From Phallusia mammillata (lineage: Eukaryota), in contig OZ281494.1 in NCBI GenBank assembly GCA_965637545.1, forward strand, positions 1,240,001 through 1,304,000: a stretch of DNA of 64,000 nt, written 5' to 3'. Of the stretch, positions 6,128 to 53,190 are shown piece by piece (within the stretch, counting starts at the first letter, position 1; the number at the start of each line of letters is the position of its first letter). The notes beneath the pieces are model-generated. The model was not told the DNA's origin and did not search any database. It saw only the letters and a list, made by a program, of their open reading frames with translations. The position numbers were made by a program, and so were the translations under genes.

Positions 6128-9100
6128 TCACTTGAAGTTTGAATAAGTGTCGAAATCAGACAGATATTGCATGACAACAGAGTAGCAGTATTTGTAGAGT
6201 TCCTGTAAAAACATAAACATAATTTGAAGACGCAATCTTTATTTCTGAATCTTACGTAAAACATCACCTTGTTGTCGACCATATTCGGTCTCATATCTCT
6301 CAGGTCTTTCACAGTTCGGAATACATCCACCCGCTTTAGAGCCTTTAAACGTTCGAGAATGTTCACCAGAGCGATGAAGGTCCCAGTTCTTGTTGATCCA
6401 TTACTGCGATAAAGAACAAGTCGTGTTAGAAAATTTAGCGAAGGTGGGCTTCAGGTGTACACACGATTTGTGTTTAGGGTTATTGAAAATTATGGCTGAC
6501 ACGAATTAGTGCGATACAGACACAAGGTTTACCTGCAAGCAACCAACACACACTGGCAATTTTGTTTTGCCCTTATTAGTTGCATTTTCTCGATAATTTT
6601 GATAAAATCAATTTCTTTGGGCGGTCGTTCCACGTCACTCCATCCCTTGACTTGCACAAGCATCAATTGCTGGGCAGCCTATACACAAGTTAAGCTACGT
6701 TTTAATCAGCACTGTTTTTAGTGACTTTTTATACAGCCAAACGCCATCATACTCACTTTGTACGATGGCCTAAAAAGAAATGTGATTTGAAAGTTAACAG
6801 TTAAAGTAAAAGTTTAACTTACGAATGCCTTAGTTGCAGACCGGAGGTCGACGGTAATCAGATTGTACAGGTTGCTTTCATTTACATCGCATACGGAAAC
6901 CGAAATAGCTTCGTATTGTAAAGCTGCATTGGTCGGAATCTGATAACAGATGTATTGCATGAAGGCGTGGTTACTGAAAAAAGAAAATGGATTAAAATTG
7001 TCACACTTACTTGAATGCTGTTGTCCAAATCAACGACAAGTGAAGCACTTCTCTCCACGACCATCTTCCAAAAGTTTTCTTCTTCTCCTGGAGCAGGATT
7101 TCTTGCTGCGATGAAGAATTCTGAAGAGCCATGTTCCTGTATATTCAAAGAAATTGCGTTTTTAATAATGATCTGATTTTTCGGAAATAAGCCAAAATCG
7201 TTGTAAGAAGCTTTGATGTTATTTTATAAGTCACCTGAATGTAAGAAGCATCCAATTGCTGGATCATCTCACTTCTATTGTCCCAAACTTTTACCGAAGT
7301 GTTCTTGTCTAAAAACAATATGATTGTATTTAATTTGTATGCTAAACAACAAAAAGCGAAGCATAGTCCGTTAATTTACATATTCTCAGCTGTGGGTGAT
7401 TTTCCTGCCATTCCTCGCCAAATCTCCAAGATGACAATACATTAAATTCTTTCTCCTGAATTTTGTTGCTAAAAAACAATAAAACTTTTGCATTGGGAAA
7501 TCAACTGTCCGTTACAAAAAAGCAGATATCAGATGTACTATAAAATGCAGTCAGCACATTCGTACAAGTACTAAAGCCCAAAGGTTTCTTTGCATATTTT
7601 CTAGCTATTATGTCAAACTGATAGCCAACACTTGCTTATAGGTTGCTAATAGTATAATTGTTTACATTTCACTTGAAGTCATAGATTGAAGTTCAGTCAC
7701 ATCTTTGTCTGTTTTCTTCAAATTCTCACGCTCCATCAGAAGTTTGTAGACGTACTTGTATTGATTCTGTAAACGCGACCTTTATTTCAAAATTTTAATG
7801 AATTTGGATTTAAACTTACAGCATTTTGAATCATGTCTTTTCGGCACTCTCTCATTTTTAGAACAATTTGAGGCACATTAACTGTTCCTCTCTCGTCAAG
7901 TTCATGAAACAGTGTATCCATCGCTATATAAGTACCAGTGCGTCCCACTCCAGCACTACATACAAACATATGCTTCATCTGATTGATCACAATAACACAG
8001 GGTTTGTCAAGTCTTTACCTGCAGTGCACAATGATTGGAGCATTTGTGCTTTGCAAATCATCGACCATGTTACGTAGGTGGATCATGTTGGTTGTAGTTA
8101 ATGGAATCCCATGATCGGGCCAAGTTGTAAACTGCAACTGTGTTATGGTTCGTTTCTCCTGTGTATGTACAATCAACTGCATAACGCTTATCAGGCCACA
8201 TACTAGTGTATCTACAATCAACTGTATCAGGCTCATCAGGCCATATACAAGCAACCAATGCTTAGAATCATAATATCGCCGCAATGGAAACAAACTCAAA
8301 ACCAAACTACATGATACAAACGAGATACTTACAGTGGTCGTAGATATAACAAACTGTCGTTGGACGATTCCACCTATGGTAATTTCTAACTGCGTTCGAA
8401 CTTTCAGATATGAGGACAAGTTGATTTCGGTTTCAACATTAGGCCAGTATTGTTCACATTTAGCCTGCAGGAAAATAAGGATGAATAACGTTAAACGCAA
8501 CTGGACTAGTGACTCATATAATTTACAAGCAAACAAAATACAAGTTTTACAATGCAGGTTCACTGAGCCAAATGATATCAACGTATTACATAATATTCAA
8601 GATCAAACCTAAGCATTTGCAGTAAATTTCACACCACCATGCTGTTAATTACCAAAACTTACCTTTCCGTTTTCCACCAAACCAGTGAGCATTACGATGA
8701 TGTTGGAGTTTTCTTGCCAAACCACCAACCAGAAATCGTTGATTGTCTCCATCTTCGGACCCTGAGTGGCGATAAACTTCCTCTCGTTATCGTAACCCGG
8801 TATATAAGCGGCGTTGATGTAATCGTTTCCACCACTTCCTTGCAAAACCACTCGAGCATGATCGTCTGTTGAACAAACACAAGTAATTAATGCAGAAAGC
8901 CAATTACACGTACAACTGTTTGCATAATTAAATCACCAATTGCAAAAACATTCTTATCACAATGTGCTCTTTATGCACAAGCTCTTCGTCTGTATTGTTT
9001 TTAAGGCAGTGCTAATGAAAGCATTTATCAGTTTTATGAAAACAGGACTTTGTTTGACTACTCCTCTCTATAAGTGTCAAGCAAACAGCATCAGTTTGTC

Positions 9101-12100
9101 TTTTGTAATAAAGTTTATTTGTATTCTTGGTTTACTGCGAGCTTGCAAAAGACAAACATTGCAACATTGTTTCTGCCATACACATTCTAACTACTTTACA
9201 TTTTGTGTCTCAATACTTACAAGGGAAAATGTTCTTGTAGCGGTTTTTCACAGCATTTTGCGGCAACTGTGACACGTCCCTTGTTCTCTGGTTGTTTTTG
9301 CTTTTGTTTTGAATTTCCTGAAATTGATTTGCTTAAAAGTAAAATAGTGCAGAAAAGAAGTGACTGCTTGCACATGTCTGCTTAACTAATGGCATTGCTA
9401 CATAGACTATATGAAACAACTACTTACTGATATGTAACAATGCAGTTGTAATAAGGAGGTTAAAAACGCTGAAGTTTAATAATATTGTAGATGCGATGCT
9501 TATATTCATGAGAAATATAAAATATTTCGCAACCCAGACCCAAATTTGGGTCACGACTCACTATTTGCGGACCCCTGGGTTAGGCTGTGCTTGCAGCATG
9601 TGTGAATTTGAATTATCAATAGTAACTAACTCAATTCATGTATGTGATTAGAATGTAAGTTCCAAAGTCCATTCTAGTTGTTTTTTTGTTGGTGAATTGA
9701 TGATTTTTCAAGTTGTTAAATTATGATTTTTGTGCGCATTAGGATTTTCTTGAAGTGTAATTAGAGATAACGGTTACCAAACCGAAACTACGTCGGAATT
9801 GCATAGGGAAGACATTCCAGTGTGCTGATTAGGAGTTACAACCCAAATGCCAGACCTCGAATTCGCTGGCCAATAGAAATCCGGACTCAGCATTTTTCTT
9901 GAACAGCTCGAACAAGTTTTTGTTTGATCTGCCTTTATGCGCTACGTTTTGATACACACCGTCTGCAACTGAAAGAAAGTTTTTGAATAGACTGATTATA
10001 AATATTTTTAAGTACGCTACAAATAGCTTATTATCTTTACCAACCAAGTAAAACGAGAATACGTGTTGACAAAAATCCGTTTTCGATAATAAGAGAATAA
10101 GTTTTCCGTAAAAGCAAACTAAGTACCAAAAATGTTTCCGCTTTGATCTCCTGTCTAAATTTATACGTACTTACACTGAGTTACACGTTTTGGACTTGTC
10201 AGTTATGTATACTAGTTTCTACGGCCAATGCAAGTTTAATATTGTTCGCTTACAACTTTTCGGAACTTCAAACAAGGTGTGAAAATAAAAAGTTTTAGTT
10301 GCTAGAATGAGAATTTGCCCAGACATATCAGTCATTTAGTTTAATTTAGGTGGGCCAATTAAGTTTATTTTGAGCTATATTCTATCTGAAAAAAAGTCCG
10401 AACTTAAATTTAAGTTTTTTAAATAAGCTTATTGTATTTTGTGCCCTATTTTCAAGCTCTTCGTTAAACATTAGCAATCTTAAATGCAGGCGCAAGTCGC
10501 GTTTAACAAAGGCACCTTGATGTGATTCAACAGTTTGACGATTTGAAACTTCTTCCTGTGAAGGTTGATCTTTGCTGTATCTGTAAATACGTAAAACATA
10601 ACTTCGGGTTAAAGTTTGAATGTATATTAAGATAGATAAGTTAGATTCCAGATAACGTTAGATTATTTTCAATGTAAGCCTCACAACTCGCACTGTTAAA
10701 AATAATTTCGGTTTGAGGCAAACAGAATTAAATTTAGAAATACAATTCAGTCACGTCTGGATTTTAGTTTACAGTTTCTCGGAACTTCTACAATAAGCTA
10801 CAATATAAATCGAAGTTTGAAATCAAACCTGTGTCTTCGACGCACAAACATGACCACCGGCACAACAATAACAAGTACCAAAAGCAACAGCCCGATCACC
10901 AGACCAGCAATCATTGCAACACTTTTTGAATAATCTGCCGTGTTATCTCCAGGAAAACAGCTTGGTGGGGGATCACCCGGAGTTATTACTGTCAGATTGG
11001 ATGTGATGTTTGTGTTGATTGAACCAGTGACAATCACTGTGACCTGCGATATATTAAAAATATATGTTTCGTGTCTTGGTTGCTTGATGTTATGTTCTTA
11101 TGTTTGGTAAAACAGAGAGTGTATTTTGAAAACGCTCAAACGAAAGAGGTTCATTACCTGAATTTTATACCAAGAAGAATGAATGAGATCTTCTATTATT
11201 GTCGAATTGTCAGAATAATAAACAGAGATTGTTTGTTGTGAACCATGGGCTTGAACCACAACCTGCATGTGATTGAGATTTGATATCGATTCAACAAAAA
11301 ACAAACTTTGTTTCAAACCTGTGCCATCAGATCGTTGTTGATGATGAATTGATCAAGTCCAGTCCATCTGACAAGCACAGTTGAAGTGTTGCATGGACAT
11401 GTCTCTGCAGTCGCGTTTACTAAGAAAGTCGTAGATTAGTTGAGACACATGAAGTTTACCAAACATATGACGTTCGCTTACGTGGTGGATAGCAACTCGA
11501 TGGGGGATTTCCATACGTTGTTGCTGGTTTGGACGTTGAGACGGTGGCGTTTATGCGTCCCATAAGCATTGTGGTGATATGTGAATGTTAAGTTCGTTAA
11601 AGTTGTTATTTATAAAGAGCTCCAGTACAAAATTAATAAAGTTGAGATGAAGCAAACCGTTTTTGGCATGTTTTATTTAGGTTTTCATCATTCGGTAATT
11701 AAAATGTTTGATTAGTGCATAAATTCAGTTCAAATGTTAATTACAACGGATTGTCTGTCGTTTATTGTAGTTAATTCGATTTGATTTGTTCAGCGATTAT
11801 TTTACACTACTTACAGTGATGCTATACTTTGTTTCGAAGCTTAGGTTTCCGATGGTTGTGTTTTGATCTACATACGGTGCTAAGATTCTCTTGTTTATTT
11901 CCGGAACATAAATTTCAACCTGAATACAACATTTGTAAAAATACGATTACACACACACAAACATGTTAAAAAAACCTAATGTGATGAATCAATACCTTTG
12001 CACTGAGATTATTGTTCTTGATGAACTGATCAAGTCCAGTCCAACTGACGACCACAGTTGAAGCATTGCATTTGGATTTCTTTACACCAGCCCTGACTAA

Positions 12101-15100
12101 ATGTGGATCAAAAAGTTGAATGCATATGACTACACAGGAATTACACAATGCTGTAATATTTAGAAAAGCGTCACAACAAAGTCATGCACTGCTTCATTGA
12201 AAAACAAGTCAAGGAATCGCAAAATATATAAGAATCATATTCCTAATTTGCACACAATTATGCTGTTTGGATCATTAAGTAAAAAACGAATCAAAAAGTT
12301 GGACATATATTTGAGTTCTTTCTATGGTTTACCTGACCTAAATAATTTTGTTTTATAATTACTCACATTTTGCTTGGCAAGCGTAGTAAGCCGGTTCACC
12401 ACTGCAGTTCATGCTTGACTGCTCCCATCCGATCCCATAATGCAACGCTCCCTGCTGGCAAGTTGTAACGTTGGAAACGGGAAAGTTTGCCGGGGATCCG
12501 TCGCTCCAATACCAACCATTTAATGACGTGTTGTAACGAGCTCCAATTAGAATATTAATATCTGGAGGCAAATTTGCAAATGCTTTAAAAATAAAAATAA
12601 TAAGACAACTTTTGTCTTCGTATGTTTTCAAAACCAAGCACGTGGTGCCAGAAACGATCCATCATATCTGGTAAAATTTTCACACGTCTCCTTGACACTT
12701 CGTAACTTGCTTGAAGTTGGCTGTGTATATCTTCCATAGGTAAATATTTCTTTGTGGCGCCCCAGGGTGTTAATTTCGGAAAACAAGGAATACCGGAATT
12801 GCCATCCTGAAAACAATATACATTTCGTTTCAGGATAACCGTATGTAAAAAACGTTTTTGTTTGACCACAGTAATAAAGATAAAAGAAAGAACGTATTAA
12901 AACGGTATCAATAGCAAGATAGTAACAAAAAGTACAAGTATGTTTAATGGTGAAAACAACGGCCCAAATAGACGTAAAAAGCGACATGCTTTATTGTTCA
13001 AACGTTGCGGCAAATGCTCATGCCATTATCAGTGATGATGTATATGGTGTTCCAAAGTACACGTAAGTTAATCAGAAAAAATAATTTTCATTGAACAGAC
13101 TAAACGGTTTAAATAAAACAGTCTAAACAGCATTTGGTACTTGTGAATAATTTTGTTTTAGTTGTTGTTAGAGACTTTGGAGTCCGCAGTGTGTTTGTTG
13201 CCTTGTGTAATGTTTTCAGTCAATTTAGACATAAATTAGAACAGATGATACAAAATTTTGGCGTCTTTGTGTCAAATTTGAGCATCAACATTTTTGTTGT
13301 GGGCCGTTAGTAATAACAAAGCTGAATGAAACACAAACCTTGGCGTCCACAGTTTCTTCCAATGGTTACATTCCACCTGAAACTCCAATGATTGCAGAAG
13401 TAAATTTCTTGGCTATGAGTTCCATTGCTGCTGGACATTGGTATGTTTAACTATTTGCATTGGTTTGTAGTTAAAATTGCCACCTTTTGTACAAGTCGAA
13501 ATACCACAGATGTCCAAGAGATTTCGTACTGCTCCAACCCGCTTCAGCCGATTTATTTGAGTATTTGTATCGTCTAGGATCGGCGGTATTGTAAAAAATA
13601 TAAACTCTCTCTAAATCTAAAACATATTACGATTACTTGATTTTTCTCTAATCTATTTGCAACAATAATGTACAATGTGTTGATTTAAAGCTAAGTTTAT
13701 GCCTAACTATGGTTACAACATGGTCTGTTGTTGAACTACACACCATATTTAAAATATCGTTATTTTGTATTCACGCAGACCTGACGTGTATTTGTCTGTC
13801 ATGAGTTGAGTGAGAGTTGTGTTGATCTGTGGGTCATCAGTCATTGCAAGATTTCCACCCAGCAAAGAACATTTCTCTTGTGCAGAGTTTGCATCCACAA
13901 GATCGTCAGATAATATTAACACACTGTCCTTCACTGCTTGAAATGTATTTTCGCAACCTAAAAAATGTGTAATCAGTATTGTTATTGTGTTTCGTCGTTG
14001 CGTAATGCTGGATCGGGAAACTTTTTGGCAATTTATGGCTTTTTATACATTATACAGCCCGGTAACGAACACCTTGCGGACCGTTTGCGTTGCCTGGATC
14101 GCGGTGAAAATTGATTTAGTTTTTGAGAATTACTTTTGGAGAACATAATTTAAAACAGGGATCACTCTAAAGTGTGCAATTGAAGGTGTTATAACGAATC
14201 CAGTCGATCCGGGTGGCATTGTATATGAGAAGGCATCAACAAAACAAGTCGCCTTCAATGGGCCTAGCGGACTTTCATTCATGAATGTTTATGCCATAAT
14301 CGCTGGTGTGATAAACGCTTCAGTGCTGTTCTTAGATAGATGATAATTAATCTTAGCTGCCCGCCCAGTGATACCAATTCGACTCGTCTCTATTATTGAA
14401 GCACCGCTAAACATTACAACAATGCTAGGCGTGCTCAGTCAAAATATCTCCAATGTTTTGTCGTACTGCTGATGCTTACAAAGCTGACATGTGCAGCATA
14501 AGTGACAGGCAACTGTGCTTGTGGGTTGACTTTTGACGGCATACAACTAAGCGTGTAGCCGAGTTGGTAGAGGGCGACACCAGAAAGTGCTTTTTGTCGT
14601 GGGTTTGCATTCCACGGCAGTTATTATATTTTTAATGTATTTTCATAAGGTACCTCCGGTAACAAGAACCCTATTGCGATAACTGAAAAACCATTTAAGA
14701 GTTTCAGGCCAAATTTGGCGTAATGGTTACAGAGGTTGATATTAAACATCCGTGTAAACATCAGATTTGGAGGACGTTTGCAAGTTTTGTTTTTGTAGGA
14801 TGACAGTTGAAAAAACGTGGGCTTTATTACATACCTATGCTGTTTATAATGCCCAACATTTTCATGATTGTCTAGAAACCAAAGAAACGCTATAAACTTA
14901 TACAACACTTATACTGTCAACTAAGACATACAACTCTTAATCTGAAGGTACTAAAAACTAGGAATCAACGACTTCTTTACAGTGGATATAAAAAGTTGAA
15001 AACAGACACTTCCAAATTTGGACTGTTCACAATAACAATTACACATAACTTGCAAGTCCAAAACTTTGTAAATCATTGTAAGTAGGTATATATTTTAAAT

Positions 15101-15320
15101 TTACATCAAAGCTGAAGCATTTTTTCTTGTAGATACAAAATATGAGGAGTGGGCCTTACCTTCCGGGCCTATATACCTTCAGGTACCTTATGAGAATGTT
15201 TGCTTTTGTTTAATGTAAAAAGGAAGTGTCTGTTAATTAACACTTACTTTCAGTTTGTCCCTGTAAGCAATAAACCATTAGCGAAATTTCTAAAATTGTG
15301 TTTAACCAATCTCCAGTCAT
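6128..15320 (-). CDS. PTP-2: full-length receptor PTP (signal peptide - split C-type lectin-like domain - 2 FN3-like - TM - D1 - D2)
   Basis: Signal exon 15320-15248 ([24 protein letters not shown]). CTL N-half 13957-13781; insert exons ~13616-12641; CTL C-half ~12561-12368. FN3-like exons ~12097-10950. [32 protein letters not shown] (~9240), [15 protein letters not shown] (~7940-8030), D2 [10 protein letters not shown]. Stop TGA 6130-6128 after FDTYSNFK. Confidence 0.92.
14550..14622 (+). other. Degenerate tRNA-like / SINE head
   Basis: A-box-like TAGCCGAGTTGG and B-box-like GGTTTGCATTCC at tRNA-like spacing; no intact cloverleaf. Confidence 0.35.
14639..15197. mobile_element. MITE in PTP-2 intron 1
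   Basis: Terminal inverted repeats attttcataaggtacct / aggtaccttatgagaat. Confidence 0.6.
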
Positions 15321-18072: not shown

Positions 18073-18182
18073 GGAACTTGGCCGAACGGTCTGGCGCGCC
18101 TGACCCATATACAGACATAAAAAACCCTGATCGGGATTCGTCCCCGGGAGAGTCCTGGGTTCGAACCCCGTGAAAAAAAAAA
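18073..18182 (+). mobile_element. tRNA-derived SINE-like repeat, copy 1
   Basis: A-box TGGCCGAACGG, B-box GGTTCGAACCC, A-rich tail; a second copy lies inverted at 20958-21055. Confidence 0.7.
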
Positions 18183-22061: not shown

Positions 22062-22087
22062 ATATATATATATATATATATATATAT
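22062..22087. repeat. (TA)n microsatellite in PTP-3 3' UTR
   Basis: About 13 AT units. Confidence 0.9.
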
Positions 22088-22127: not shown

Positions 22128-25100
22128 TCACTTGAAGTTTGAATAAGTGTCAAAATCGGAAAGATATTGCATGACAACAGAGTTGCAGTATTTGTAGAGT
22201 ACCTGTAATAACCAAAACATTATTTGAATACGCACTGGATAGTAGTGTTTTTTTTTCCATTGCGAAACAGAAAACTTTTTAAAAACATTTTTACCTTGTT
22301 GTCGACCATATTCGGTCTCATATCTCTCAGGTCTTTCACAGTTCGGAATACATCCACCCGCTTTTGTGCCTTCAAACGTTCGAGAATATTCACCAGAGCG
22401 ATGTAGGTCCCAGTTCTGGTTGATCCATTGCTGTAAACACATCATTATTTTAGAATCCGGTATTTCAAAAGTGTAAAATTACACTTAGTTAAGGCGGTTC
22501 AACAGGAGTTTTTCTGCTCAGATTTATATCCAATTTTGTTTAAAAATTCGCAAGAAAAACAATTACTGTTGACAACAGTAAAGCGTAATTAAGCTCCTAA
22601 TGAGCTTCTGTCGCGGATTTAAATCCGAAATTTATTGAGTTTGGACTTTTCTTCCACTCGCCTTTTCATATCAACATCTTTATGAGACCGGCATACCCCG
22701 GCATATCGCCTCTAATTAGTTGTTGTGCGTTTTCACAAACAAACTGTTAGACGTGGTATCCAAGTAAAACATTACCTGCATCCTACCAACACACATTTGG
22801 AATTCTGTTTGGTCTTTAGTCGTTGTATTTCCTCGATAATTTTGATGAAGTCCATTTCTTTCGGAGGTTGTTCCACGTCACTCCATCCCATGACTTGTAA
22901 AAGCATTACTTGCTGGGCAGCCTGACACCAAATAGGGGTTTTCTCAATTTTGTGTGAACAATTAGTTTTGTCAAAATAAAGAAAAGCTTAGTTTGGTTAA
23001 CATAGTAATTCGTTTGTAAGATACGTAATAATTTATTGTAAAAAAGTGTAAGAAAAAATTGTTGACAAAATACTAACTCTCCACCTCGAAATAGTAATAC
23101 AATCGATGTTGTCGGGAAGTTATTAACTTACAAAGGCGTTGGTTGCAGACCAGACGTTGACAGTTATCAGATTGTGAACGTTGAAACTATTCACTTCACG
23201 TACAGAAACCGAAATGTCTTCATATTGTAAAGCTGCATTGATTGGAATCTGAAAACGATGTATGGTATATAATATAGAGTACGGCTATTATAGGAAAATG
23301 CGAAACGTCAAAATTACTTGAATGCTATTGTCTAAATCAACGACAAGTGAAGCTCCTCTCTCCACGATCATCTTCCAGAAGTTTTCTTCTTCTCCTGGAG
23401 CAGGATTTCTTGCAGCGATTATGAGGTCTGAAGAGTCATGTTCCTGTAAAGAGAAATCTTGCATTTGATTGCCAACAACCAAAAATGCATTTGATTGATC
23501 CTTATTGGGTTTAGTTAAATGGCAAATACATTTGAAGCATTCTGGTACCAGAAAAAAATCACATCTCGAAAGTTATCACCTGGATATATGAAGCATCTAA
23601 TTGCTGCATACTTTCATTCTTTTTGTCGTAAACTTTGACTGATGTGTTTTTGTCTAAAAACAATGTTGTGTGTGATAGGAAAACATATGAAAGATTTGTA
23701 GTCAACTATTTACATGTTCTCAGCTGTGGGTGATTTTCCTGCCATTCTTCCCCAAATCTCCACGATGACAGCGTGTTGAATTCTTTGTCTTGCATTTTCT
23801 TACTAGAACACAAATCTTTAGTGTTTCAACGTAGAAATTCCTAATCAGAACAGAATGTGTATAATATGCGTAAGCAATCATATGTCGCATTCTCTTATAC
23901 TGTACGTAGCGAAAGTCCCATAATAAAACTTTCACCTATTAACTGGTGGGTCAAATGCTTAAATATCTGAACGGGCAATGTACTACTAAACTGTTTGGGT
24001 GCAAGTCGCTTCACAACGATACAAGAAAATACAATTACTGCAAAGGCAAATGCCCTGTATGCAAGCTAACAAAAAGTAACAATTGACTTACATTTCACTT
24101 GTAGTCATCGTTTGTAGTTCTGTCACATCTTTATCTGTTTTCATCAAACTTTCTCGCTCCATAAGCAGTTTGTAGACGTACATGTATTGTTTCTGTATAA
24201 AATATACGCTATTGAAACTAATTTACGTGTACTGGAATTAGTTGCTTACATTATAACTTTACTTTTATCAATGTCAAGTTGTGTATAGTAGATAAAAATA
24301 CATACCAATAGTACAATTATGGTCAAGCCGATTCATAACTTCAAGCCAACTAAAGCCCGATGTGCTTTCGGTTAGGTGTATATGATTAATGTATCGTCAA
24401 GTGTAATTAGAGCGACGATCAGCTTACCGAGTTTTGAATCATGTCTTTTCGATTCTCTCTCATTCTTAACACGGTTTGTGGCACATCAACTGTCCCTTTG
24501 TCGTCAAGTTCATGAAACAAAGTGTCCATCGCTATGTAAGTTCCTGTGCGTCCCACTCCAGCACTGCATACAAACATATGCTTCATTTGAGTGATCAAAT
24601 AACATAGGGTTGATTAAGTCTTTTTACCTGCAGTGCACAATGATTGGAGCATTTGTGTTTTGCAAATCATCAACCATGTTACGTAGGTGGATCATGTTGG
24701 ATGTAGTTACTGGAATCCCATGATCGGGCCAAGTTGTAAACTGCAACTGTGTTATGGTTCGTTGCTCCTGTAAAACATACTCGCATAACTTATAATAGAC
24801 TGTTTTTTTTATTCGTCACCGCACCAGGAATTCCAGAACAATTCCTTTCATCCACTTTCGCATTAGACTGTGTTCAGTTTATACTTTACTTAATATGGAA
24901 ATATAGAAACTGGTTTTTAGGTTATGGTCATGTCAGAACTTAAGAGTTTATCAAATCTCAAACTAGTGGATTTCAAAGAAATATTAGAAGATAGCCGCTT
25001 TGTATTTGCTGCGGCTCGTTTGCGTTCATTTCCTCCCTTTTTTCTTTACGCCGAAACCCTGATTGGAAGATCAGATTTCAGTGCACTTAATCAACGGGCA

Positions 25101-28100
25101 AGCCTCGTGGTATTCCAAGCTTTGGTGTTCAATGAACCAAACTGTTTTTGCCTGCCAAACTTGTTACGCTGGTCAGACTACATTTTGGTTTGTTATTTGT
25201 ACTTACCCTGTTTGTAATTAAAACAAACTGTCGTTGAACGATTCCACCGATGGTTATTTCAAGTTGTGTTCGAACTGTGAGGCCTGGCGACAATTTCCTT
25301 TCAGATTCAACGTCGGGCCAGTATTGCTCACACTTTGACTGATCGTAACAAAGATCACAACGTTAGTGCAAACTGTATGTTAATTTACGCTTGCTTGCAT
25401 TTCCGTATAATGGGTTAAACATATTTCATGTGGCATGATGTGGTAGTTGTAGTAACCAATCATAGCATTTTAAAAGTTATGTATATTACTCGATAATCAA
25501 GTATGGCTACGCTTTATCCTGATGACAATTTGGTCATTAATTACACCACAGTGTGTTACTCACTGAACACTTCCTTGATTTATCCACAGTGCCCTGGTGT
25601 TTTTGTTTTAATTTTTATTAGCGAAAAATGAAGGGGGTTAACCAACCTTTCCGTTTTCCCTCAAACCAGTGAGCATTACGATGATGTTGGAGTTTTCCTG
25701 CCAAACCATCAACCAGAAATCGTTGATTGTCTCCTTCTTCGGACCCTGAGTGGCGATGAACTTCCTCTCGTTATCGTAACCCGGTATATAAGCGGCGTTG
25801 ATGTAATCGTTTCCAACGCTTCCTTGCAAAACCACTCGAGCATGATCGTCTATTAAACAAACAAAACAAGAAGCTAACAGCCGAATATGTTTCCATAAGA
25901 TAATGTGATCTGAAATCTGTTAGTTTTTGGTTCAGATGGTGCCTGATTTTTTTCTTAACAATTACAGACAGTTGGTAGCATTAACAAAACATTTTTGCTG
26001 ATTAGCGTTTATTGTCATTGCTTTTCTTCTTCGGTGAAAAAAATACCCTTTTGTTCATTTACATTTTTTTACTTACAAGGAAAAATATTCTTGTACCGGT
26101 TTCTCACAGCGTTTTGCGGCAACTGCGACACGTCCCTTGTTCTCTCGTTGTTTTTGCTTTGGTTTTCGATTTTCTAGAACAGCAAATATCCCAATATGAA
26201 ATGGTTGAAATACTTTAGCAACATTTTGATGTTACATGTCAGTGGGGAAAAGTGGCACATGACTTGGTGTTAAAACTGATTCAAGTGACAACACAGTAAA
26301 AACTATATATCTGTAAATTTGTGTTATTTTTTGTGCTATATGAAAACGCCTGATTGCATCAATTATTATCCCCTTCTCGTACGATTTGGGGTCATCTGTC
26401 ATTCTATTGTTTGTGACGTTTCCTGGTTTCGATTGTGACGTAGAGTCTGTGTGTAAACCTTCCTGCTTCGGCTGCGTGAATTCGATTAACAAACTTTAAA
26501 CCAGTAACAAACCTTAAACTCGTCGGAGAAAAGAGATCCTGACTCAACGCTTTTCTTGTACAAGTCAAACAATTTGCTGACTCTGCAGTTGAACGCCGCG
26601 GTTTCAGAAAATGGGTGTTCGTGAACTTGGTTTTCAACTTGAGGCGCTGAAAAGTAAAAAATCAATAAATTTAGATTAAATTGCGCGACTTATACCGAGA
26701 AAACATTTTGGTAAAAGATCATCCTAGCCAAACAGTTTATTTCCTTTTTAGTAAAGTAACACAAACAAACAAAAATTGTGTCAAGTTTCACTAAAAGTTG
26801 TGGAATGCATTTCGGGATCGTATGATACTCCACATTTAAAGTTGACACATCAGTCTAGTACGATTTGTAGCCGGCCCTGATAGAAAAAGTGTGAATTAAA
26901 CCCCTTTCTGACGTCAATATGTATGTGTCAGTGAGAATAAAAAACATACGATTTTGACATCACCTAAAATTCCAAGTCTTAACGGTTGCTGAGCTCCCGC
27001 ATGACTCGGTTGATCCGTTCCAAGCCTATAAAGCACAATAGAACTTCAATTTCACTTTCATTGTGCATTACCCTCTCGACCAGCATGACTTAAGCGCAGG
27101 TTTTTCATTCATGCTATTTTGACAGGCTTTCAAACTTTTTATCCAATCACGAACTATTATGCACCTTCGGTTAAGTGTGAGTTTCGGGTATATATCAACA
27201 TCCCTATTAAGTCTGCAAGGGTCTACTAAAACATAGCCATGCACAAAGGGAATAAATTTCAGGAAGTACTGCAAACAAAAAAATGCACTTAAGGTCACAA
27301 TAGTTATGCATTTCATTGGCAAAATCTATTTGTGGTGATAAAAATCACCTCATCTCAAAATTTTCAAAGTCAATATTTACACATACATTCGGAAATTTTG
27401 AACTGCAGCAGATCGTCATTCGAAAAAATGACATTATTCATCACAAGCAATACCTGTGTTTTCGTCTTAAAAACATGATCACCAGCGCAACAATGACAAG
27501 CACCAAAAACAACAGCCCGATCACCAGACCAGCAATCATTCCAACACTCGTTGAAGTCGCATTTAGATTATCTAAACAAAACAGTTTGTTACACAAGGAG
27601 CACTGCTTTATAGGACTTGTGCAGCTGTAAGTGATCGAAGATGCAAAAACCTGTTTTGAAAATGGATGTGTGCTTACGACAACACTTTGTTACCATCCAA
27701 ATCAAATGTCACGAAGCCTTCTGTGTTTAGGAATACAATTTTACGACACATGAGTGAACTTACGATACACGCCTTTTACCTATGGAATAGCAGCTTTGAG
27801 GGGGATTACCGGGAGTTTTTACTGTCAGATTGGATGTGATGTTTGTGTTGATTGAACCACTGACAATCACTGTGACCTGGAATAAATAACAGGACAAATT
27901 TGTTTTGTTTAGTCAATATTGAAGCAGAAAGGGTGGGTTTGTTTGAAACAGTGCTTGGTGATACTTAATACGAACATTGAAAAACCTGCATCGTTATTAA
28001 TTGGAGTTTACAATTGCCGGAAGAAAGCTATGCGTCACAGTATCATCATGTGGCGTACTGAAAGGGTTTCGATATGCGTGTGGTTATCTAATTACAATTA

Positions 28101-31100: not shown

Positions 31101-31824
31101 TTATTACCTTTTATACAAGTCAAAATACCACAGATGTCCGAGAGATTTTGTACTTTTCCAAGTGCCATTTTCAACGGGGCTTTTCGAGTATTTGTATTGT
31201 TGATAATCAGGTTTGTAAAAAACATAAACACGTTGCAAATCTGAAACAATTCTTAAAAATTGCATGATATTCATCCAAAAATTAATATTTTGCAAACACC
31301 GAAATTATTTTCGTGTTTTCAATTTCTTGTTTCCATCTTAACCTGTTGTGTATTTGTCTGTCAATAGTTGAGTGAGAGTTGTGTTAATCTGTGGGTCATC
31401 AGTCATTGCAAGATTTCCACCCAGCGATCCACATTTTTTCTGTGCATTGTTTGCATTCCTTTCATCGTCAGATAATATCAAGACACTGTCCTTCACTGCT
31501 TGAAAAGTTTTTCTGCAACCTGTAATATTTTTTTTTTGCTTTAATTTGACCAGAAAATTTGAAAAAGCTGATCAATTTGCTTTTACGAGATTCTGAATGA
31601 ATATTGATTGTCACTTTAAATATAATTGCTACTAAATTCAAGATAAAAGTCACAATGGTTAAAACCGAGGACCGTTTTCACTTGACAATCTGTTATCCCG
31701 GATTCCAAATACAAGAACAAAAAACAAAAACTTTTCATTATTGGAAATAGTGGTACTTACTGTTTGTTTGTCCCTTTGAATAATAAACCAATAGCAATAT
31801 TATGAAAATATTGCTTCCTGTCAT
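22128..31824 (-). CDS. PTP-3: full-length receptor PTP, same architecture as PTP-2
   Basis: Signal exon 31824-31761 ([21 protein letters not shown]). CTL N-half ~31519-31343; insert exons ~31240-30483; CTL C-half ~30397-30204. Two FN3-like modules ~29183-27780. TM exon 27571-~27454. [25 protein letters not shown]2 [10 protein letters not shown], ends FDTYSNFK*. Introns and 3' flank resemble those of PTP-1. Confidence 0.92.
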
Positions 31825-36325: not shown

Positions 36326-39300
36326 ATGACAAAAAATATTCTAGGCAAGGTTTTGGTTACTTTGTTGCTAGTTTATGCCACAAGTAAGTAAAAACAGAAC
36401 GTAAATTACCCCATGTTATGAAAACATTACGTAGCTATATGGTTTTATCCACCAACAGAACAATGTACAAATTAATTTGTTAGTCATTAGTATACTATTG
36501 GATAAGTTATAGAGTCCAACATAATGCTTTCACACAATCACCTAACATAATGATTAAAATTAAATTTGACGTGTTCAGGTAGCGCAAATACTTTGAAAGC
36601 AGTGAAGGACAGTGTGTTGATTTTATCTGACGATCTTGTGGATGCAAACACTGCACAGGAGAAATGTTCTTTGCTGGGTGGAAATCTTGCAATGACTGAT
36701 CACCCACAGATCAACGCTACTCTCACTCAACTCATGACAGACAAATACACAACAGGTTTCGGTTGAGGGAATACAATGACATTAGGAACATGACAGTTAA
36801 TTTAAAACGAATGCTAAACAAACTTCTATCAACTTTTGATTCAAATTCAAATTGATTCAAATCATTGTTGCAAAACAATCAACAATTTTTGTAGTTGACA
36901 TGGCTGTACGGTCCGTTCCTTAAGATAATTCAAAACCCAGTGTATAAACCCTAGGCCAAACAGAATCCACCGTACTTGTACACAGTATTTCACAGAATAT
37001 ATATTTCGCCAAAAAGTTTTGGCATCGTCAGGGTTTTGAATTGTATTGATGTAAGAACAGTAATCACCGGAAAATTGCTACTGTGGGTGGATTCAAGTTC
37101 AAACTAGATTTTATATTCCTTAAGATAATACTGCAATGTAGACAAAGCGATACTAAATTGTTTCAGATTTGCAGCGAGTTTATATATTTTACCGCACAAA
37201 TGAAAATGAACGATACAAATACTCAAATAACTCGATTGAAGAGGGTTGGACCAGTACGAAATCTCTTGGACATCTGTGGTATTTTGACTTGTACAAAAGG
37301 TGACGGCTTTTGACGCAAATAAATGCGTAACCGTAAAACACTCGTTTTATTCAACAGCAATCCTAAAAACTTGGGCCAACCAATTTACTTCTGCAATTAC
37401 GGAAGAGGAAACATGGACTTGGAGAAGTGGCTTGTGAACATCGGAACAACTTGTCAAGGTCCCAGATTTAAGCTTTACTTCGAATGGCAACGTTTAATGG
37501 AGCCACACAGTTTTGCTAAAAAATATTGCCTCGATAACATTTTCTAATGTACAAAAAAACGTTTTAATTGCTAATTTGTTTTAATTGCTATTTTTTTATG
37601 TTTTTGTTGCTCTAAAGTTTGGTTTAAACTGGCACACCAACTACAGGATTAGAAAAGTAACGAAACATCGAGAAAAAGAACTAAATTTCACAAACAACTA
37701 ACCGATAAAATTCGTTTGCACCTTTTGGCTACAACTGGGTGTTGTCCACAACTGTTCATCCGCAACCCAACCGCAAAATACGTTACGTGCCGTTTTTACA
37801 CACGACGTGAATTGTTTCGTTGTGTTGGCATTCGATATTAGGACATGCGCAAACAAACAGCTCCAAAACCATTATTTTCTTTTTTGTTGTTTGTCATTCC
37901 GTTTCAACTAACTTTATATTTTTTCCTTGTAAGTCGAAAACAAGTCTTTTACAAAGGGCACGGATGGACATTTCGGTATTCCTTGTTTTCCGACAAGGAC
38001 ACAAGCAAACGTCAGACATTTATCTATAAAAGCGGTGGGCACCCATATTCAAGCAAGTTGCGAAGTGTCAATGATACGTTTGACAGATTCGACCAATATA
38101 GAGGATCGTTTGTGGTACCAAGTGAGCGTTAGGTTTTAAAAGACAACAAATGGTAAAGTTGTATTAATACCATTTTCGAATTTAATTCCAGCCTTTAACG
38201 TTTTGATCGGAGCTCGTTACAACACGTCGTTGAATGGTTGGTTTTGGAGCGACGGATCTCAAGCAAACTTTCCTGTTTCTGACGTCACAACTTGCCAGCA
38301 GGGAGCGTTGCATTATGGGATCGGATGGGAGCAGTCAAGCATGAACTGCAGTGGGAAACCGGCTTACTACGCTTGCCAAGTGAAACGTGAGTAATATTCA
38401 TTAGCTCATCGATTTTAAGGCACTGTTAATTTAGACAGTGACTATTTGTAGTTGTAACAACCGTGGAAACATTCCGATGCAACTCTTCAACTGTGCTTGT
38501 TAGATGGACTGATCAAATCAGCAGCCTAAATGGTCTTAACGCTGAGGTAAAGTTTGTTGAGCAATACTCGAGGAATTCAAATCATTTTACTGTGACAAGT
38601 CTGTTTGTCTTTTGATACCAGGTGGAAATATATGTTTTGGAAAAAAATTCTAGAACATTCGCCATGTACACCGATCTATCTACTAATGTTGGAAACCTTG
38701 ATTACCAAACCCTATACAACATCCAGGTAAAAAGTGCCCGCGAACAGATTGATTTTCCTTTATGCATTGTTTCTATTGATGCAACATAAGGTACCTGAAT
38801 TGATAGGCCTGCGTTAATAAAAAGAGAAAATTAAGAAAACTTTTGTGTTATTTTTTTTTGTTAGAGAGATGGAAGTTCCAGTAACTGAATAAGTTTTTGT
38901 TAGTAGTTTATTTGGACCAAAGCAAAGTAGAAAATATTTTAATTGGTTTGTAGACTTTCTACACTTAGAACCAAGTTTAAGTTTTTTGATCAGTCACCTT
39001 ACACAAATCAAACTAAATTTTCTCGAAGTTCAATGAATGTTTCACCAAGCCGAGTAATTCATAAAAGTTTTTTTAGTTATTTACCAAAAACTGTAAGATT
39101 CTTATGTCGTAATGTTTTTAAAAACTTGATAGTAACTAAAAAATACCTACATGTTTCAGGTAACTGTGATGCTTGGTGGTGCGCTGAGTGCCAACCTCAC
39201 TTTTAATCATTCGATATCCACTTTTGGGAATCCGCCATTAAATTGCTTTCCTCAAGGTAAAAATTTTGATCAAGTTTCGACAAATACATAACTTTTTTTC

Positions 39301-41355
39301 AAATAAAAAATGATGGCTTGCAACATATTTTCTATTTAATACACGATTGTGAGAAAAAGACAAATTAAGACGTATTATTAATTTGCAGCCCAGTCACTTT
39401 TGCAACAATTGGAAAATTTGAATTTCAAACATGCTCGGAAAATAGAATCCGTTCAAACTCTAATTGGAGCTTTTTCCCAAAATCATGTTGAAACCAATGG
39501 CACCACTTACGTACATGGAGAAACACAACTGCGCATCGTTGTTACCAACATCAACCAGGAGACATATAACTCAACTTTACAGTTGGGATCATCTAAGATT
39601 GCCTTCTTATTGCAGACAAACGGGGTTCAACGCGTCGTTATCGATGTGTATGTCTTTAAGATAAACACAAACGAAACTGTACAGATTCAACCGGTCCAAG
39701 CCGGTTCCCTAACCACAACAAAGTACATAGCTGCATTGAACACCACCTTTATTAATATTGTTGGTCGCAATGCAGATAGCTTGAAACCCGCACACAGCAA
39801 CCATTCAACCAGCAACGAGGAAAACAATCATCTTCAAGGAAACGCAAATTTCACCGTATCTCCAATGTCACCAGAATCCGTCTGCAAAAAATTCAAATTG
39901 GGAAAGACCAACAATGCAAACCTTATTATCAACAAAATGGAACCAATCTGTCTCTACTTCGACAGAGTTGAAGAAAAGTATTCCGATCGTGGTTGCGTCA
40001 CAATTACTGATAACGTATCAGGCAATGTCACTTGCAAATGCAACCATCTCACTTTGTTCACTGTTCTGCTTGCTGTCCAATCCATCCAAATACCAAAGGG
40101 CGTCACGGTAAGCAGGTCACTGTAAATTAAACACAACCAAGTAAGTCACGTTTTGCATTTAGGTCGCATATTATACGACAAAATCAGCATCCATCATGTC
40201 TCTGGTTGCCACCATAATAATCCTATACAAATCGAAACACAGCGGAGATCGGGTTCCGGTTCAAATCAGCTTGTCACTGGCTCTTCTTCTCTTACACGTT
40301 GTCAACATATCACATGATCTTGCCGTCTTGAATGAGGTTGCTTGCGTTATGCACACTGCAGCATATCAGTATGTGTTGCTGTGTTCAGGTTAGTGAAGAA
40401 ATGAGATAATGTAACAGAACACGAATGTTGGCGCATTGCATGAAATCTGACATGTTTTTGTTCAGGAATGTGGTTTCTGGTTGAAGGAATTCGTCTCTTC
40501 ATGGCAACATCGTTTCCATTTGAGTATTACAACCAGAATTCGTCGAATCGTCTCAGGAAATTCATGCTGATTGGTTGGATTATTCCTGCTTTTTTAGTAG
40601 GCTTGTCCATAGCTGTAGAGTTGCCCCTCGGTATCTACATGAAGCCACAACCATCGTTCAAGCAATGTAACGAATTTATTCCGATTCTCAAGTACGACAG
40701 ATGCTGGTTGGCTCCTGGAACTTCGATCTTTTTCACAACGGTGGTCGCTCCTCTTGCTCTCATCCTCTTGATCAACTTCATGATTGTGCTGAAAACGACC
40801 CATGTGATGCTGAACTCAAAGAAGATGCGAAACAGAGGTGAAGATGCAGTGACAGACGACTCCTTAAGAGCAGCAAGGAGTTTTATCTTACTCTTCCTCA
40901 TGCTCGGCGGTACTTGGGGTTTTGCCTTCGTTACAGGTGATGTTTGTGTGTTTGAACTTTTCCGTTTTTAAATATTAACATCATTGTACCTGCATTGTTT
41001 GTTTTAATTGTTTAACAAAAATTCTTTTTGTACAGGAATTGGCAACAATATTTCGAACGAGGTGTTCATGTACATCCACAACGTGTTAAATGGATCGCAG
41101 GGAATCGCCGTCTTCCTGTTGTATTGCGTCATGCGTGGCGACCTCAAACAGGAAATGCTGACACGCAAGCGTAAAGCTGATGTCGGATTTGAGCTGCAGG
41201 AGAACGCTGCAAACCCAGAAGGAGAAGAAAGTTCAAACCTGGTAGGAGGTGAAAGTTCAAACCCATTAAGAGATGAAAGTTCAAACCTGGTAGGAGGTAA
41301 AAGTTCAATTGAGCACCAAGGTGAAAGTTCGAACGAGAAGGATGTCAAATTTTAA
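36326..41355 (+). CDS. aGPCR-A: adhesion GPCR (signal - split CTL-like domain - 1 FN3-like - GAIN/GPS - 7TM - Ser-repeat tail)
   Basis: Exons ~36326-36383, 36579-36755, 37167-37299, 37358-37458, ~37957-38121, 38192-38387, 38452-38546, 38622-38726, 39160-39256, 39388-40107, 40162-40388, 40466-40936, 41036-41355. GPS motif GC..VTCKCNHL/TLFTVLL; TM3 WFLVEG, ECL2 CWL, TM6 LGGTWGF and TM7 NGSQG typical of secretin/adhesion-class 7TM. Confidence 0.92.
41227..41334 (+). repeat. Coding 24-bp tandem repeat (ESSNxxxx, ~4.5 units) in aGPCR-A tail
   Basis: gaaagttcaaacctggtaggaggt-like units: ESSNLVGG ESSNPLRD ESSNLVGG KSSIEHQG ESSN. Confidence 0.85.
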
Positions 41356-46012: not shown

Positions 46013-47000
46013 CAAACTATCTCTTTAGCATGATTACATTCGTGTGTATCGAACTGTCGTTGTCGCCTCAAAAGCCCGTTTTTAGTGTTGGTCAATCTTC
46101 TAACATTGAATTGCCGTTGACAAAAGTTTCAACCGATGTATGATTTTTATTGCTCATTCAGTTTTTTGTGATTTATGTTGTATATTTAGATTTTGTGCTT
46201 GTGCATTAATGTCGTACAAAATCCACGATGTCTTGTCTATTTCGTTGCATTAAGGTAGAACAGCAAACTGTTTGTCAAACCGAAGCAAATTGTTCACAAT
46301 TAATATGTTGATTTAGTAATAATTAGATTTGTCATCGGAACTATGTAAACAATACTGCTCAATTACACTAATAGTTGTTTTAAAACTTTAAAATGGTATT
46401 GTCTCACTGAAAATCAACACCATGAAACAATGAAGCTTAGTTGCTGAGTTGTGTGAGGATGTATTTATGGATCCACAAGCATAAGTGAAACCATCGGAAG
46501 TGTGTTCGATAATTCAATATTTGCGATTTGAAGGTGTCGACCACTCTGTATTTGTAAGTTGCAAGGACGTTAGGTGGCGTAAGAGGGTCATTTGTGACGG
46601 GATGCGTTGACTGCAAATACTTGGCATCAGTCTTTGCCAAAAAATCTCAATCACATTGCTTCTTTCCAACTGATTTAGATGTTAGTCGGGTTTTTCCTTT
46701 TGGTTTTTTGAGGTTGAAGTCTAATCAAGTGTCGTAATTTTCACGTTCGAATTGGTAACTTTCGTCAATTGAGCTCTGAATTTAAGAAATTACGGATCAG
46801 GAAATTACGGATGAATTTAAGAAATTTTCGATCCTGCTTGCAACTTCATACTTTAGTCATCAATTATTGCATATATTTTGTTAACTTCCTCAAGGTTGTT
46901 GACTACGTCAAATCCAATACCTACATTTACCACCCGGAAGTGACAAGGAGACTGGCCTGTATACGTTCAACGCCTCTTACAAACTTTTCCGTTTCATAGG

Positions 47001-47950
47001 ATACAACTTGCCAGCATGGAGCGTTGTATTATGGGATTGGATGGGAGAAGTCAAGCATGGAGTGCAGTGGGGAACCGGCTTGCCATGCTTTTCAAGTGAA
47101 ACGTGAGTATTCTATATACGTGTACTAATATACAAAAGATTCCCTAGTGTAGTGAATTTTAAAAACGCTACCTAAAATCTTTCGTAGCCATTTCTTTCAA
47201 TGCCTCATTGCGCTGTTTTCTTATGGTAAAATTACTGAACGAATGACAATGAAGTGTAGTATAAGTTCGATTTGCAGTTAAAGATGAAAAAGTGTTTGTC
47301 TTATCACAGTATCGAGAACCAGTACTTTTTTTGACGGTACTGTTTTTTGCAGCCCTGTTATTTCTCCAACATTTGGGAAATAAGAATTTAGCAACTACTG
47401 GAGAAATAAAAACATTGAAAAACAAATTGGATTTTTTCCCTAAAATCATGCTGAAACCGACGGAGTTGCAAGTAGGGCCGGGTTCGGGTTCGGGCCTGGT
47501 TCGGAATCGGAAAACAGGCTCAAAACGGACCCGACTTGACGTTCCGTGTCCGCCATTGTTTTTTAAATAAAATCACTTAGCTAAGTAACAATTCTCTGGC
47601 TTTGACCTCATGCCCACCCTCCTCTAAAACGTATCGTTTTACCCATTGTCTACTATTGTTCAATGTGTTCGTTGTCTTTCTCTTTTTTCTTTCTCATCCT
47701 TTGTTGCAAGGCTTTCGTGGGTAGGCCTGTCAATCAAAATTTCGGGCCCAAACGGGCTTTGCAAAAACGTTTCGGGTTCGGGCCGGGCTTCGGGCTTCGG
47801 GCTTATACATTCGGGTTCGGGCCAGTCTTCGGGCTTATACATTCGGGTTCGGGCCGGATTCGGTCTCAGATTTCGGGCCCGCTTGCAACTCTGGACGGAA
47901 CCACTTATGATTACGGAAAAGCTGTACATCGTTGCTACCAACATAACCGC
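47001..47950 (+). pseudogene. Relic of an aGPCR-B-like gene (CTL C-half fragment + start of GAIN exon), interrupted by a MITE
   Basis: 47001-47103 matches the TTCQxGALxYGIGWExSSMxCSGEPA..QVK|gtgagt exon with substitutions. The following intron and 47352-47460 / 47893-47950 align to aGPCR-B ~51030-51455 with frameshifts. No 7TM follows. Mirrored at ~62567-63516. Confidence 0.85.
47461..47892. mobile_element. Foldback MITE with (TTCGGG)-like subterminal repeats (mirror ~62625-63056)
   Basis: Ends gagttgcaag / cttgcaactc; arrays of ttcggg(c); interrupts the GAIN exon of the aGPCR relic. Confidence 0.75.
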
Positions 47951-52400: not shown

Positions 52401-53190
52401 GTTTGTGATCGATTGAATCGTTTGTTTCAGGAATGTGGTCTCTGGTCGAAGGAATTCGTCTGTTTATGGCCACTTCCTTTCCAGTCGAGTTTCAAACTCA
52501 GGATTCAACGAAACGTCTCAGGGTTTTTATGCTCACTGGCTGGCTTATTCCCGCTCTATTAGTGGGAATATCTACTACTGTGGGGTTTGTCATGGGAATC
52601 TACATGAAGCCCCAACCGCTAAACGAGCAGTGTAACCAATTGATACAGGTTCAAAAATACGACCGATGCTGGTTGGTGCCCGGTACTCCGATCTTCTACA
52701 CAACGGTCATCGCTCCTCTTGCTCTTGTCCTCTTCATCAACCTGATCATTATCCTGAAGACAACACATGTGATGCTGAACTCGAGACGGATGCGAAACGG
52801 AGGAGAAGATCCGGGGACAGGAGATGCATTAAGAGCATCAAAGTCTTTCATCTTACTCTTCCTCATGCTTGGTGGAACTTGGATTTTTGCTTTTTTCACA
52901 GGTAATAATTGTACATTGTGTGTTTCGAATTACTAACAAATTAATTACATCAATGTAAAGTTACATCAATAAATGTTAAGCACCCTTTCTTTTCTGCAGG
53001 AATTGGCAACGAGATTTCGAACGAGGTGTTCATGTACATCCACAGCTTGGTTAACGGATCGCAGGGTATCGTCGTCTTTCTGTTGTATTGTGTCATTGAT
53101 GATGACGTCAGAAAGGAAGTTTTACCGTGCAAGCGTGAAGCTGATGTTGGGTCTGATTCACAAGTAACAGGACAAACTTTTAGGGGGTGA
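49450..53190 (+). CDS. aGPCR-B: adhesion GPCR (signal - split CTL-like domain - GAIN/GPS - 7TM, no FN3, short tail)
   Basis: Exons ~49450-49522 (MTGLSISKFVILFLMIHNVYGQTK), 49690-49866, 49955-50090, 50319-50449, 50603-50767 (acceptor reads GG), 50835-51029, 51288-52006, 52136-52361, 52431-52901, 53000-53190. GPS CKCHHL/TLFTVLL; WSLVEG; NGSQG. Confidence 0.88.

Follow-up and report, generated by a model that had tools for sequence, protein, structure and literature searches.

How does one kind of ectodomain come to stand in front of two unrelated signalling bodies? This question is raised by a stretch of 64,000 nucleotides (nt) from the ascidian Phallusia mammillata (NCBI GenBank assembly GCA_965637545.1, contig OZ281494.1, positions 1,240,001 to 1,304,000, forward strand), called the window here. 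Within 47 kb it holds a cluster of four genes, two of which (PTP-2 and PTP-3) encode receptor-type protein tyrosine phosphatases (RPTPs) and two (aGPCR-A and aGPCR-B) adhesion G protein-coupled receptors (aGPCRs). All four open with the same six exons, which encode a signal sequence and a lectin-like head. The best overall explanation, which we consider moderately probable, is an older family of head-bearing phosphatases whose 5' end was captured by an aGPCR, with both classes now serving as parallel pathways for related ligands.

The exon models of the four genes were built from splice sites and not from transcripts of these genes. They bear out the common six-exon opening with matching intron phases (1, 1, 2, 1, 1, 1) that a preliminary description of the locus had claimed. 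The signal exon runs from phase 0 to 1, the N-terminal half of the C-type lectin (CTL) fold is a 1-1 exon, three insert exons follow (1-2, 2-1 and 1-1), and the CTL C-half is again 1-1. The N-half (177 nt) and the C-half (195 nt) each have identical length in all four genes, and the inserts measure 133–136, 74–131 and 156–177 nt. A phase-1 signal exon of the type MTG...GQT is found in PTP-2, PTP-3 and aGPCR-B, in agreement with the three of four genes given in the preliminary description; that of aGPCR-A differs. Across the classes the CTL halves match with 85–92% DNA identity and E-values of 1e-54 to 1e-89, which is far beyond chance. The open models comprise 1096 (PTP-2), 1104 (PTP-3), 957 (aGPCR-A) and 827 (aGPCR-B) amino acids, and aGPCR-A is fully open with canonical splice sites across 13 exons. 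Non-AG acceptors occur at insert 3 of aGPCR-B (GG) and at the third exon of the first FN3 unit of PTP-2 (AT); both units can be skipped in frame. For inserts 2 and 3 of aGPCR-A and aGPCR-B the donor and acceptor choices are best fits.

The bodies were recognised by Pfam on single exons. In aGPCR-A and aGPCR-B, respectively, GPS (PF01825) was found with E-values of 5.6e-9 and 5.1e-8 and 7tm_2 with 2.5e-18 and 5.2e-17, and in PTP-2 and PTP-3 Y_phosphatase was found with E-values down to 2e-26. The best matches among solved structures are ADGRG4, ADGRG2 and ADGRG6 for the seven-transmembrane (7TM) part, ADGRF1 and ADGRD1 for GPS, and PTP-alpha and -epsilon for the phosphatases. Both GPCRs keep seven helices. 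Their GPS reads CKC(N/H)HL↓TLFTVLL, with the HL↓T cleavage consensus just before the first transmembrane helix (TM1), and cleavage is predicted from this motif. The GAIN region is one exon of 239 codons, of which the GPS part alone is recognised by sequence, and both GPS tryptophans are replaced (F, Y). PTP-2 and PTP-3 show the layout of receptor-type PTPs, namely signal peptide, ectodomain, one transmembrane segment (TM) and PTP domains, in the same order as a RefSeq homologue. The catalytic motifs of the first phosphatase domain (D1) are kept (K/RNRY, WPD as WPDHG, and HCSAGxGRTG), and the second domain (D2) of the window PTPs is probably inactive. A motif scan of the window proteins revealed no convincing cytoplasmic pair of immunoreceptor tyrosine-based inhibitory and activating motifs (ITIM and ITAM). 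The C-tail of aGPCR-A carries 3.7 copies of an 8-residue Ser/Glu-rich repeat (41210–41308) that is absent from aGPCR-B and possibly provides kinase or arrestin sites.

According to the preliminary description, the genes diverge into TM-D1-D2 or GAIN-7TM after the CTL C-half. The two kinds of body were confirmed, but three-exon FN3 units intervene in the PTPs (two each) and in aGPCR-A (one); aGPCR-B has none. These triplets (exon phases 1-0, 0-0 and 0-1) were identified through the homologous region of a Clavelina protein, which models as two FN3 domains (TM-score 0.66, feature scores 0.92–0.93). The part common to aGPCR-A and the PTPs hence begins with the signal exon and includes one FN3. After it, the body changes at a phase-1 intron: PTP-3 goes on with a phase-1 TM exon, and aGPCR-A with a phase-1 GAIN exon 132 nt later. 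In aGPCR-B and in a broken third copy the CTL C-half is joined straight to GAIN, in aGPCR-B across an intron of 258 nt; the other introns span 58–1290 nt. Each module, be it head or FN3 triplet, is a phase 1-1 unit, and the TM and GAIN exons both begin in phase 1. Phase 1-1 modules are the classic condition for exon shuffling. Just upstream of the GAIN exons there is neither an in-frame start nor a signal sequence, and consequently these exons need the signal exon of the head. In PTP-2 the last FN3 exon and the TM exon are fused (10829–11043), and PTP-3 has an intron of 208 nt at this place (27454–27876); this intron gain or loss falls exactly where GAIN is attached in aGPCR-A.

Single head and FN3 exons gave no Pfam matches, and the fold of the head was taken only from a Clavelina homologue. 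A profile of the four CTL C-halves found 26 matches in 1.8 billion proteins, among them two full-length eukaryotic ones, both from Clavelina lepadiformis. XP_076817985.1 has the order head-FN3-TM-PTP-PTP, and XP_076817574.1 (CAK8679940.1) the order head-FN3-FN3-TM-short Tyr tail. The two genes lie about 75 kb apart on OX392444.1, and their heads are 28–34% identical to those of the window. In the Atlas model of XP_076817574.1/CAK8679940.1 about 125 residues across 25–280 align to Lectin_C clusters with TM-scores of 0.41–0.46, the query being twice that length, and there are weak sequence matches of the head to Lectin_C, Dectin-1 and CLEC9A. The head is thus modelled as a CTL fold split after the second helix by an insert of about 130 residues, as seen on the Clavelina homologue and not on the window proteins. 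The motifs EPN, QPD and WND are absent from all four heads, which reads as a lectin-like fold without the classical Ca2+ sugar site.

Clavelina heads as queries led to homologous proteins in Clavelina only, and the GAIN exon as query gave no match, a blank that says little under the length limit of that search. None of the 26 profile matches is a GPCR with this head; the profile had 64 residues, and few ascidian genomes are annotated. Most of the other matches are the size of an exon and were called on animal DNA within metagenome assemblies; there FN3-like exons come after the head, and the unit often recurs in tandem. Among 13 animal-derived loci with head and FN3, no GAIN, 7TM or PTP was found within 3–10 kb downstream, except for the Clavelina PTP gene, and a metagenome search for loci related to the CTL C-half or the 7TM exon found none. 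Tandem head-FN3 units on the animal-derived contigs L006 (4554–10366), L011 (191–10270) and L002 (10046–14780) are multi-head genes or tight arrays from another species. Two assemblies of Clavelina lepadiformis provide PTP models with 83% identity in the head and 87% over the whole protein; their phosphatase domains are much closer, and they represent either a polymorphic allele pair or close paralogues.

The preliminary description called the ectodomains near-identical. This has to be given up, since only the CTL core reaches 80–88% amino acid identity among the four genes; the insert has 50–61% and FN3 39–54%, so that the whole head is 64–74% and head plus FN3 57–65% identical. Identity between the classes is about that within them (aGPCR-A/PTP-2 74%, aGPCR-B/PTP-2 74%, aGPCR-A/aGPCR-B 70%, PTP-2/PTP-3 67%). 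Synonymous differences, counted only at codons for the same amino acid, amount to 11–16% in the core, 21–43% in the inserts and 38–50% in FN3 (Fisher p from 0.02 to 5e-6). In GAIN of the two GPCRs they amount to 12%, in D1/D2 of PTP-2 and PTP-3 to 18–22% and in the 7TM part to 35%. The introns no longer align between the genes, whereas the exons do. The CTL core is therefore homogenised across the PTP and GPCR classes. Gene conversion acting on the core exons of both classes would produce such a synonymous mosaic; as homogenisation goes beyond the head to GAIN and D1/D2, concerted evolution in a tandem array explains it equally well. The ratio of nonsynonymous to synonymous rates (dN/dS) stays under 1 for all exon groups measured (core 0.20–0.51 over all pairs, insert 0.27–0.75, GAIN 0.70, 7TM 0.29, D1/D2 0.22), and no positive selection was seen on the insert by these pairwise, saturating estimates. 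A tree of the heads rooted on Clavelina unites the four of the window in one clade (100/100) and places aGPCR-A and aGPCR-B with PTP-2 (91/87). This is consistent, if weakly, with capture from the PTP family.

Sequencing reads were consulted as contigs placed at 80% likeness; such contigs cannot show absence, and their depth is not copy number. Run X1, probably DNA and possibly related to the assembly source (1–5% site differences), covers 30 of 30 bins of aGPCR-A with pieces that are 95–99% alike. Its depth is low and even in intronic bins, and many contigs pile up on the CTL and 7TM exons, which indicates that both are multi-copy. One X1 contig joins 38392 to 39462, i.e. the CTL C-half to GAIN in the arrangement of aGPCR-B. 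X1 also contains a rearranged joint at the C-tail repeat of aGPCR-A. Three putative RNA runs yielded paralogous contigs (80–97%) with splices of insert 1 to insert 2, of insert 3 to the CTL C-half (38121 to 38192), of the CTL C-half to a PTP-type FN3 exon and of GAIN to TM1, all at or next to predicted exon edges, and also of the CTL N-half to the C-half with 418 nt between them. According to these putative RNA contigs, the split head is spliced and expressed as modelled in paralogues of the family, and there is expression of GAIN-7TM relatives too. aGPCR-A itself is contained in no public run recorded as RNA.

In our working model an ancestral ascidian receptor would have combined the split-CTL head, with its three-exon insert of about 130 residues, with FN3 domains and a TM-D1-D2 phosphatase body. 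The join to the GPCR was most likely a later capture by exon shuffling, because the PTP form is present in Clavelina and no GPCR version was found there. Presumably an inverted duplicate of the 5' part of a PTP gene, comprising signal and head and perhaps one FN3, was inserted into the phase-1 intron that precedes the GAIN exon of an existing aGPCR. While phases and layout are plain, the event and direction of this capture are what we infer. The chimera would then have been duplicated again, giving rise to aGPCR-A, aGPCR-B and the broken copy, and kept under purifying selection, and the aGPCR-B lineage may have lost FN3 later. Gene conversion would keep the CTL core exons alike across the classes while insert and FN3 exons drift apart.

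Going by what is known of the two families, the head may bind a partner on a cell surface or in the matrix, and the variable insert would determine its specificity. Since EPN, QPD and WND are absent, the ligand is probably a protein or bound independently of Ca2+. In the PTPs, binding or clustering would alter how active D1 is on phosphotyrosine substrates. In the GPCRs, a pulling force combined with binding would expose the tethered agonist TLFTVLL after self-cleavage at the GPS and thus activate G proteins. The insert differs as much between the classes as within them. We therefore consider it moderately probable that each class recognises ligands that are related but presumably differ, and signals along a pathway of its own in parallel with the other; a matched on/off pair is less likely. 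Tyrosine dephosphorylation is not by nature the opposite of G-protein signalling.

Several points weigh against this model. The low synonymous divergence of the core could partly reflect constraint and not conversion. The head tree has six rows, its key node lies below the starred threshold and is blurred by conversion, and the direction of transfer is unproven. Among the placed RNA contigs none joins head or FN3 to GAIN; of the previously postulated splicing of CTL exons to both bodies, they show, in paralogues, the joint to a PTP-type FN3 exon. Likewise none of these contigs is identical to aGPCR-A, all being paralogues at 80–97%, and the insert-3 acceptor of aGPCR-B is not AG.

The strongest alternative, though in our view unlikely, is the candidate paired-receptor system of the preliminary description. 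PTP and GPCR would bind the same ligand on the same cells with opposing outputs, and members with a short Tyr tail would supply a third. One diversified head, kept alike by conversion, would be wired to phosphatase, Tyr-motif tail and aGPCR in one cell type, and the same ligand class on another cell would drive either dephosphorylation or force-dependent G-protein signalling. Vertebrate paired leukocyte receptors (KLRC/NKG2, Ly49, NKR-P1, PIR) and Botryllus fester/FcoR are likewise clustered, with related binding domains on different signalling ends. In NKG2, Ly49 and PIR pairs the ligand-binding domains are homogenised (PMC3210942), as is the CTL core across the classes here. The hypervariable insert, the greater difference of the two Clavelina assemblies in the head (83%) than in the whole protein (87%), and the existence of ascidian paired allorecognition receptors in Botryllus, which use ITIM/hemITAM tails (PMC12582321), also suit this idea. 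However, the likeness ends at the most variable part: the inserts are 50–61% identical, are not matched pairwise between the classes and are excluded from a homogenisation that includes GAIN and D1/D2. Their dN/dS of 0.27–0.75 gives no positive selection at this resolution, and ITIM/ITAM logic is missing. In vertebrate pairs and Botryllus, ITIM is combined with ITAM or adaptor tails within one receptor class, whereas in the window the head is carried by an enzyme and by a 7TM receptor.

A little less likely still is that the GPCR chimeras have no function of their own and arose recently as by-products of rapid turnover in a tandem array, being either decaying or not expressed. The broken third copy, the GG acceptor in aGPCR-B, the transposon fragments between the genes and the lack of an observed aGPCR-A transcript would agree with this. 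Yet aGPCR-A is fully open with canonical splice sites, the 7TM parts of the two GPCRs differ at 35% of synonymous codons at a dN/dS of only 0.29, with GPS and seven helices intact, and the exons can still be recognised between the genes, unlike the introns. Improbable, too, is a transfer in the reverse direction, or an independent uptake of the head by both classes from a further source, for instance tandem multi-head genes. Tandem head-FN3 units with no visible PTP or GPCR nearby do exist (L002, L006 and L011), but Clavelina shares the PTP form, the GPCR form was not found there, and aGPCR-A carries an FN3 triplet of PTP type. That head and GAIN-7TM exons are separate genes, or their junction a misassembly, is very improbable. 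In its favour, the window contains an exact inverted repeat that is probably an assembly duplication, misassembly being a hazard already named in the preliminary description, and no RNA contig bridges the junction. Against it, aGPCR-A, aGPCR-B and the broken copy (78%) have diverged and all show the head-GAIN join, with splice sites in matching phase; the X1 contig shows it in its B-type form; the GAIN exon lacks its own start; and reading on past the head adds no more than a short tail.

The window GPCRs resemble the GRAFS Adhesion family in the GPS HL↓T site, the tethered-agonist-like TLFTVLL, the secretin-type 7TM and the modular N-terminus. C-type lectin domains on aGPCRs were reported in amphioxus (PMC2246102), domain shuffling of aGPCR N-termini is general (PMC12716839), and most aGPCRs of Ciona have been described as GPS-only (PMC2396169). 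The window receptors differ from aGPCRs in the CTL fold split by the insert of about 130 residues, in a head probably taken from a neighbouring RPTP family with a core still 80–88% identical, and in the one-exon GAIN without the GPS tryptophans. By their catalytic domains the PTPs are nearest to R4-type RPTPs (PTPRA/PTPRE), followed by CD45 and LAR types, and they share with R4 members the single TM, the tandem D1-D2 and intact D1 motifs. The ectodomain of R4 RPTPs is a short glycosylated stalk; the window PTPs have split-CTL and FN3 instead, a shortened D2 and genes in tandem arrays. The two Clavelina proteins, uncharacterised RefSeq entries, are alike in split-CTL head, FN3 and TM, followed by PTP-PTP or a short Tyr tail, but no GAIN-7TM version was found. 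Thus the form with head and PTP is already in RefSeq, unnamed. In the literature searched, in which subscription journals are thinly covered, we found no description of CTL with PTP in tunicates or of a head common to RPTP and aGPCR, in line with the preliminary description, and the layout supports its lineage-specific family with one head on RPTP and GAIN-7TM bodies in one cluster. The shared head is a real and apparently undescribed architecture.

The locus would provide a dated case, resolved to exons, in which an ectodomain passed from one receptor class to another, unrelated one, while donor and recipient have stayed neighbours and continue to exchange sequence. Two questions become testable: by what route aGPCRs acquire new N-termini, and whether a ligand can be common to an aGPCR and an RPTP that are both orphans, in which case one binding screen would de-orphan both. 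If the paired-receptor interpretation were true, activating/inhibitory pairing would extend beyond ITIM/ITAM logic; if false, the locus would still add a new domain architecture to ascidian receptors of an unstudied family.

Table 1. Positions of genes and exons in the window (aa, amino acids).
Feature	Position	Strand	Remark
PTP-1, 3' part only	1..4868	+	D1b to D2 end; ectodomain before window start
PTP-2, whole gene	15320-6128	-	
PTP-2 signal exon	15248..15320	-	MTG...GQTE, phase 1
PTP-2 head	12367..13957	-	N-half 13957-13781; inserts 13616-13484, 13412-13339, 12806-12642; C-half 12561-12367
PTP-2 first FN3 triplet	12096-11996, 11919-11815, 11578-11482	-	third exon with acceptor AT
PTP-2 second FN3 triplet	11419-11319, 11262-11158, 11043-10829	-	last exon is fused FN3c+TM
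PTP-2 juxtamembrane exons, D1, D2	6128..10580	-	D1 9317-7666, motif intact; short D2; stop at 6128
PTP-3, whole gene	31824-22128	-	
PTP-3 signal exon	31761..31824	-	MTG...GQT, phase 1
PTP-3 head	30203..31519	-	N-half 31519-31343; inserts 31240-31108, 30986-30883, 30638-30483; C-half 30397-30203
PTP-3 FN3 triplets and TM exon	27454..29182	-	triplets 29182-28677 and 28602-27780; separate phase-1 TM exon 27571-27454
PTP-3 juxtamembrane exons, D1, D2	22128..27025	-	stop at 22128
aGPCR-A, whole gene	36326-41355	+	head-to-head with PTP-3, 4.5 kb between
aGPCR-A signal exon	36326..36383	+	
aGPCR-A head	36579..38386	+	N-half 36579-36755; inserts 37167-37299, 37358-37458, 37945-38121; C-half 38192-38386
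aGPCR-A single FN3 triplet	38452-38546, 38622-38726, 39160-39256	+	39-45% aa identity to PTP FN3 units
aGPCR-A GAIN region	39389..40107	+	one exon; GPS CKCNHL↓TLFTVLL
aGPCR-A 7TM exons	40163-40388, 40466-40936, 41036-41355	+	tail with acidic 24-nt repeat
aGPCR-B, whole gene	49450-53190	+	
aGPCR-B signal exon	49450-49522	+	MTG...GQT, phase 1; head to 51029; no FN3
aGPCR-B head exons		+	N-half 49690-49866; inserts 49955-50090, 50319-50449, 50603-50767 (acceptor GG); C-half 50835-51029
aGPCR-B GAIN exon	51288-52006	+	GPS CKCHHL↓TLFTVLL
aGPCR-B 7TM exons	52136-52361, 52431-52901, 53000-53190	+	
Broken third copy, B type	46980..47948	+	3' part of CTL C-half, intron, start of GAIN exon; interrupted, then truncated

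The window has a G+C content of 37%, CpG is not depleted and introns are small. From left to right it contains the 3' part of PTP-1 (+), PTP-2 (-), arrestin-like exons (-), PTP-3 (-) and aGPCR-A (+), followed by a retrotransposon fragment, the broken third GPCR copy and aGPCR-B (+). PTP-1 is an inverted paralogue of PTP-3 with a DNA identity of 81–86%, introns included. The broken copy is interrupted at 47465–47894 by an insertion of about 430 nt that resembles a miniature inverted-repeat transposable element, with inverted ends and GGGTTCGG repeats. The stretch 46517–54718 recurs inverted at 55799–64000 across a gap of 200 N, with 0 differences over 8202 nt, and is a probable scaffolding duplication of the assembly. 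The second aGPCR-B within this inverted copy, on the minus strand, was consequently rejected as a separate gene.

The arrestin-domain exons between PTP-3 and PTP-2 (17877–19061, -; Arrestin_N with an E-value of 2.3e-5, Arrestin_C with 4.5e-4) represent an alpha-arrestin-like gene or fragment inside the GPCR/PTP cluster. An open frame of 153 codons without a Pfam match lies between them and PTP-3 (19790–20248, -). Gag-, zinc-knuckle- and protease-like sequences in two overlapping frames at 44422–45713 (-) were identified by eye as a retrotransposon fragment of the Ty3/Gypsy type. Beside the gap, a GIY-YIG-like frame at 54720–56125 (E-value 0.002) is probably a piece of a Penelope-type retroelement.

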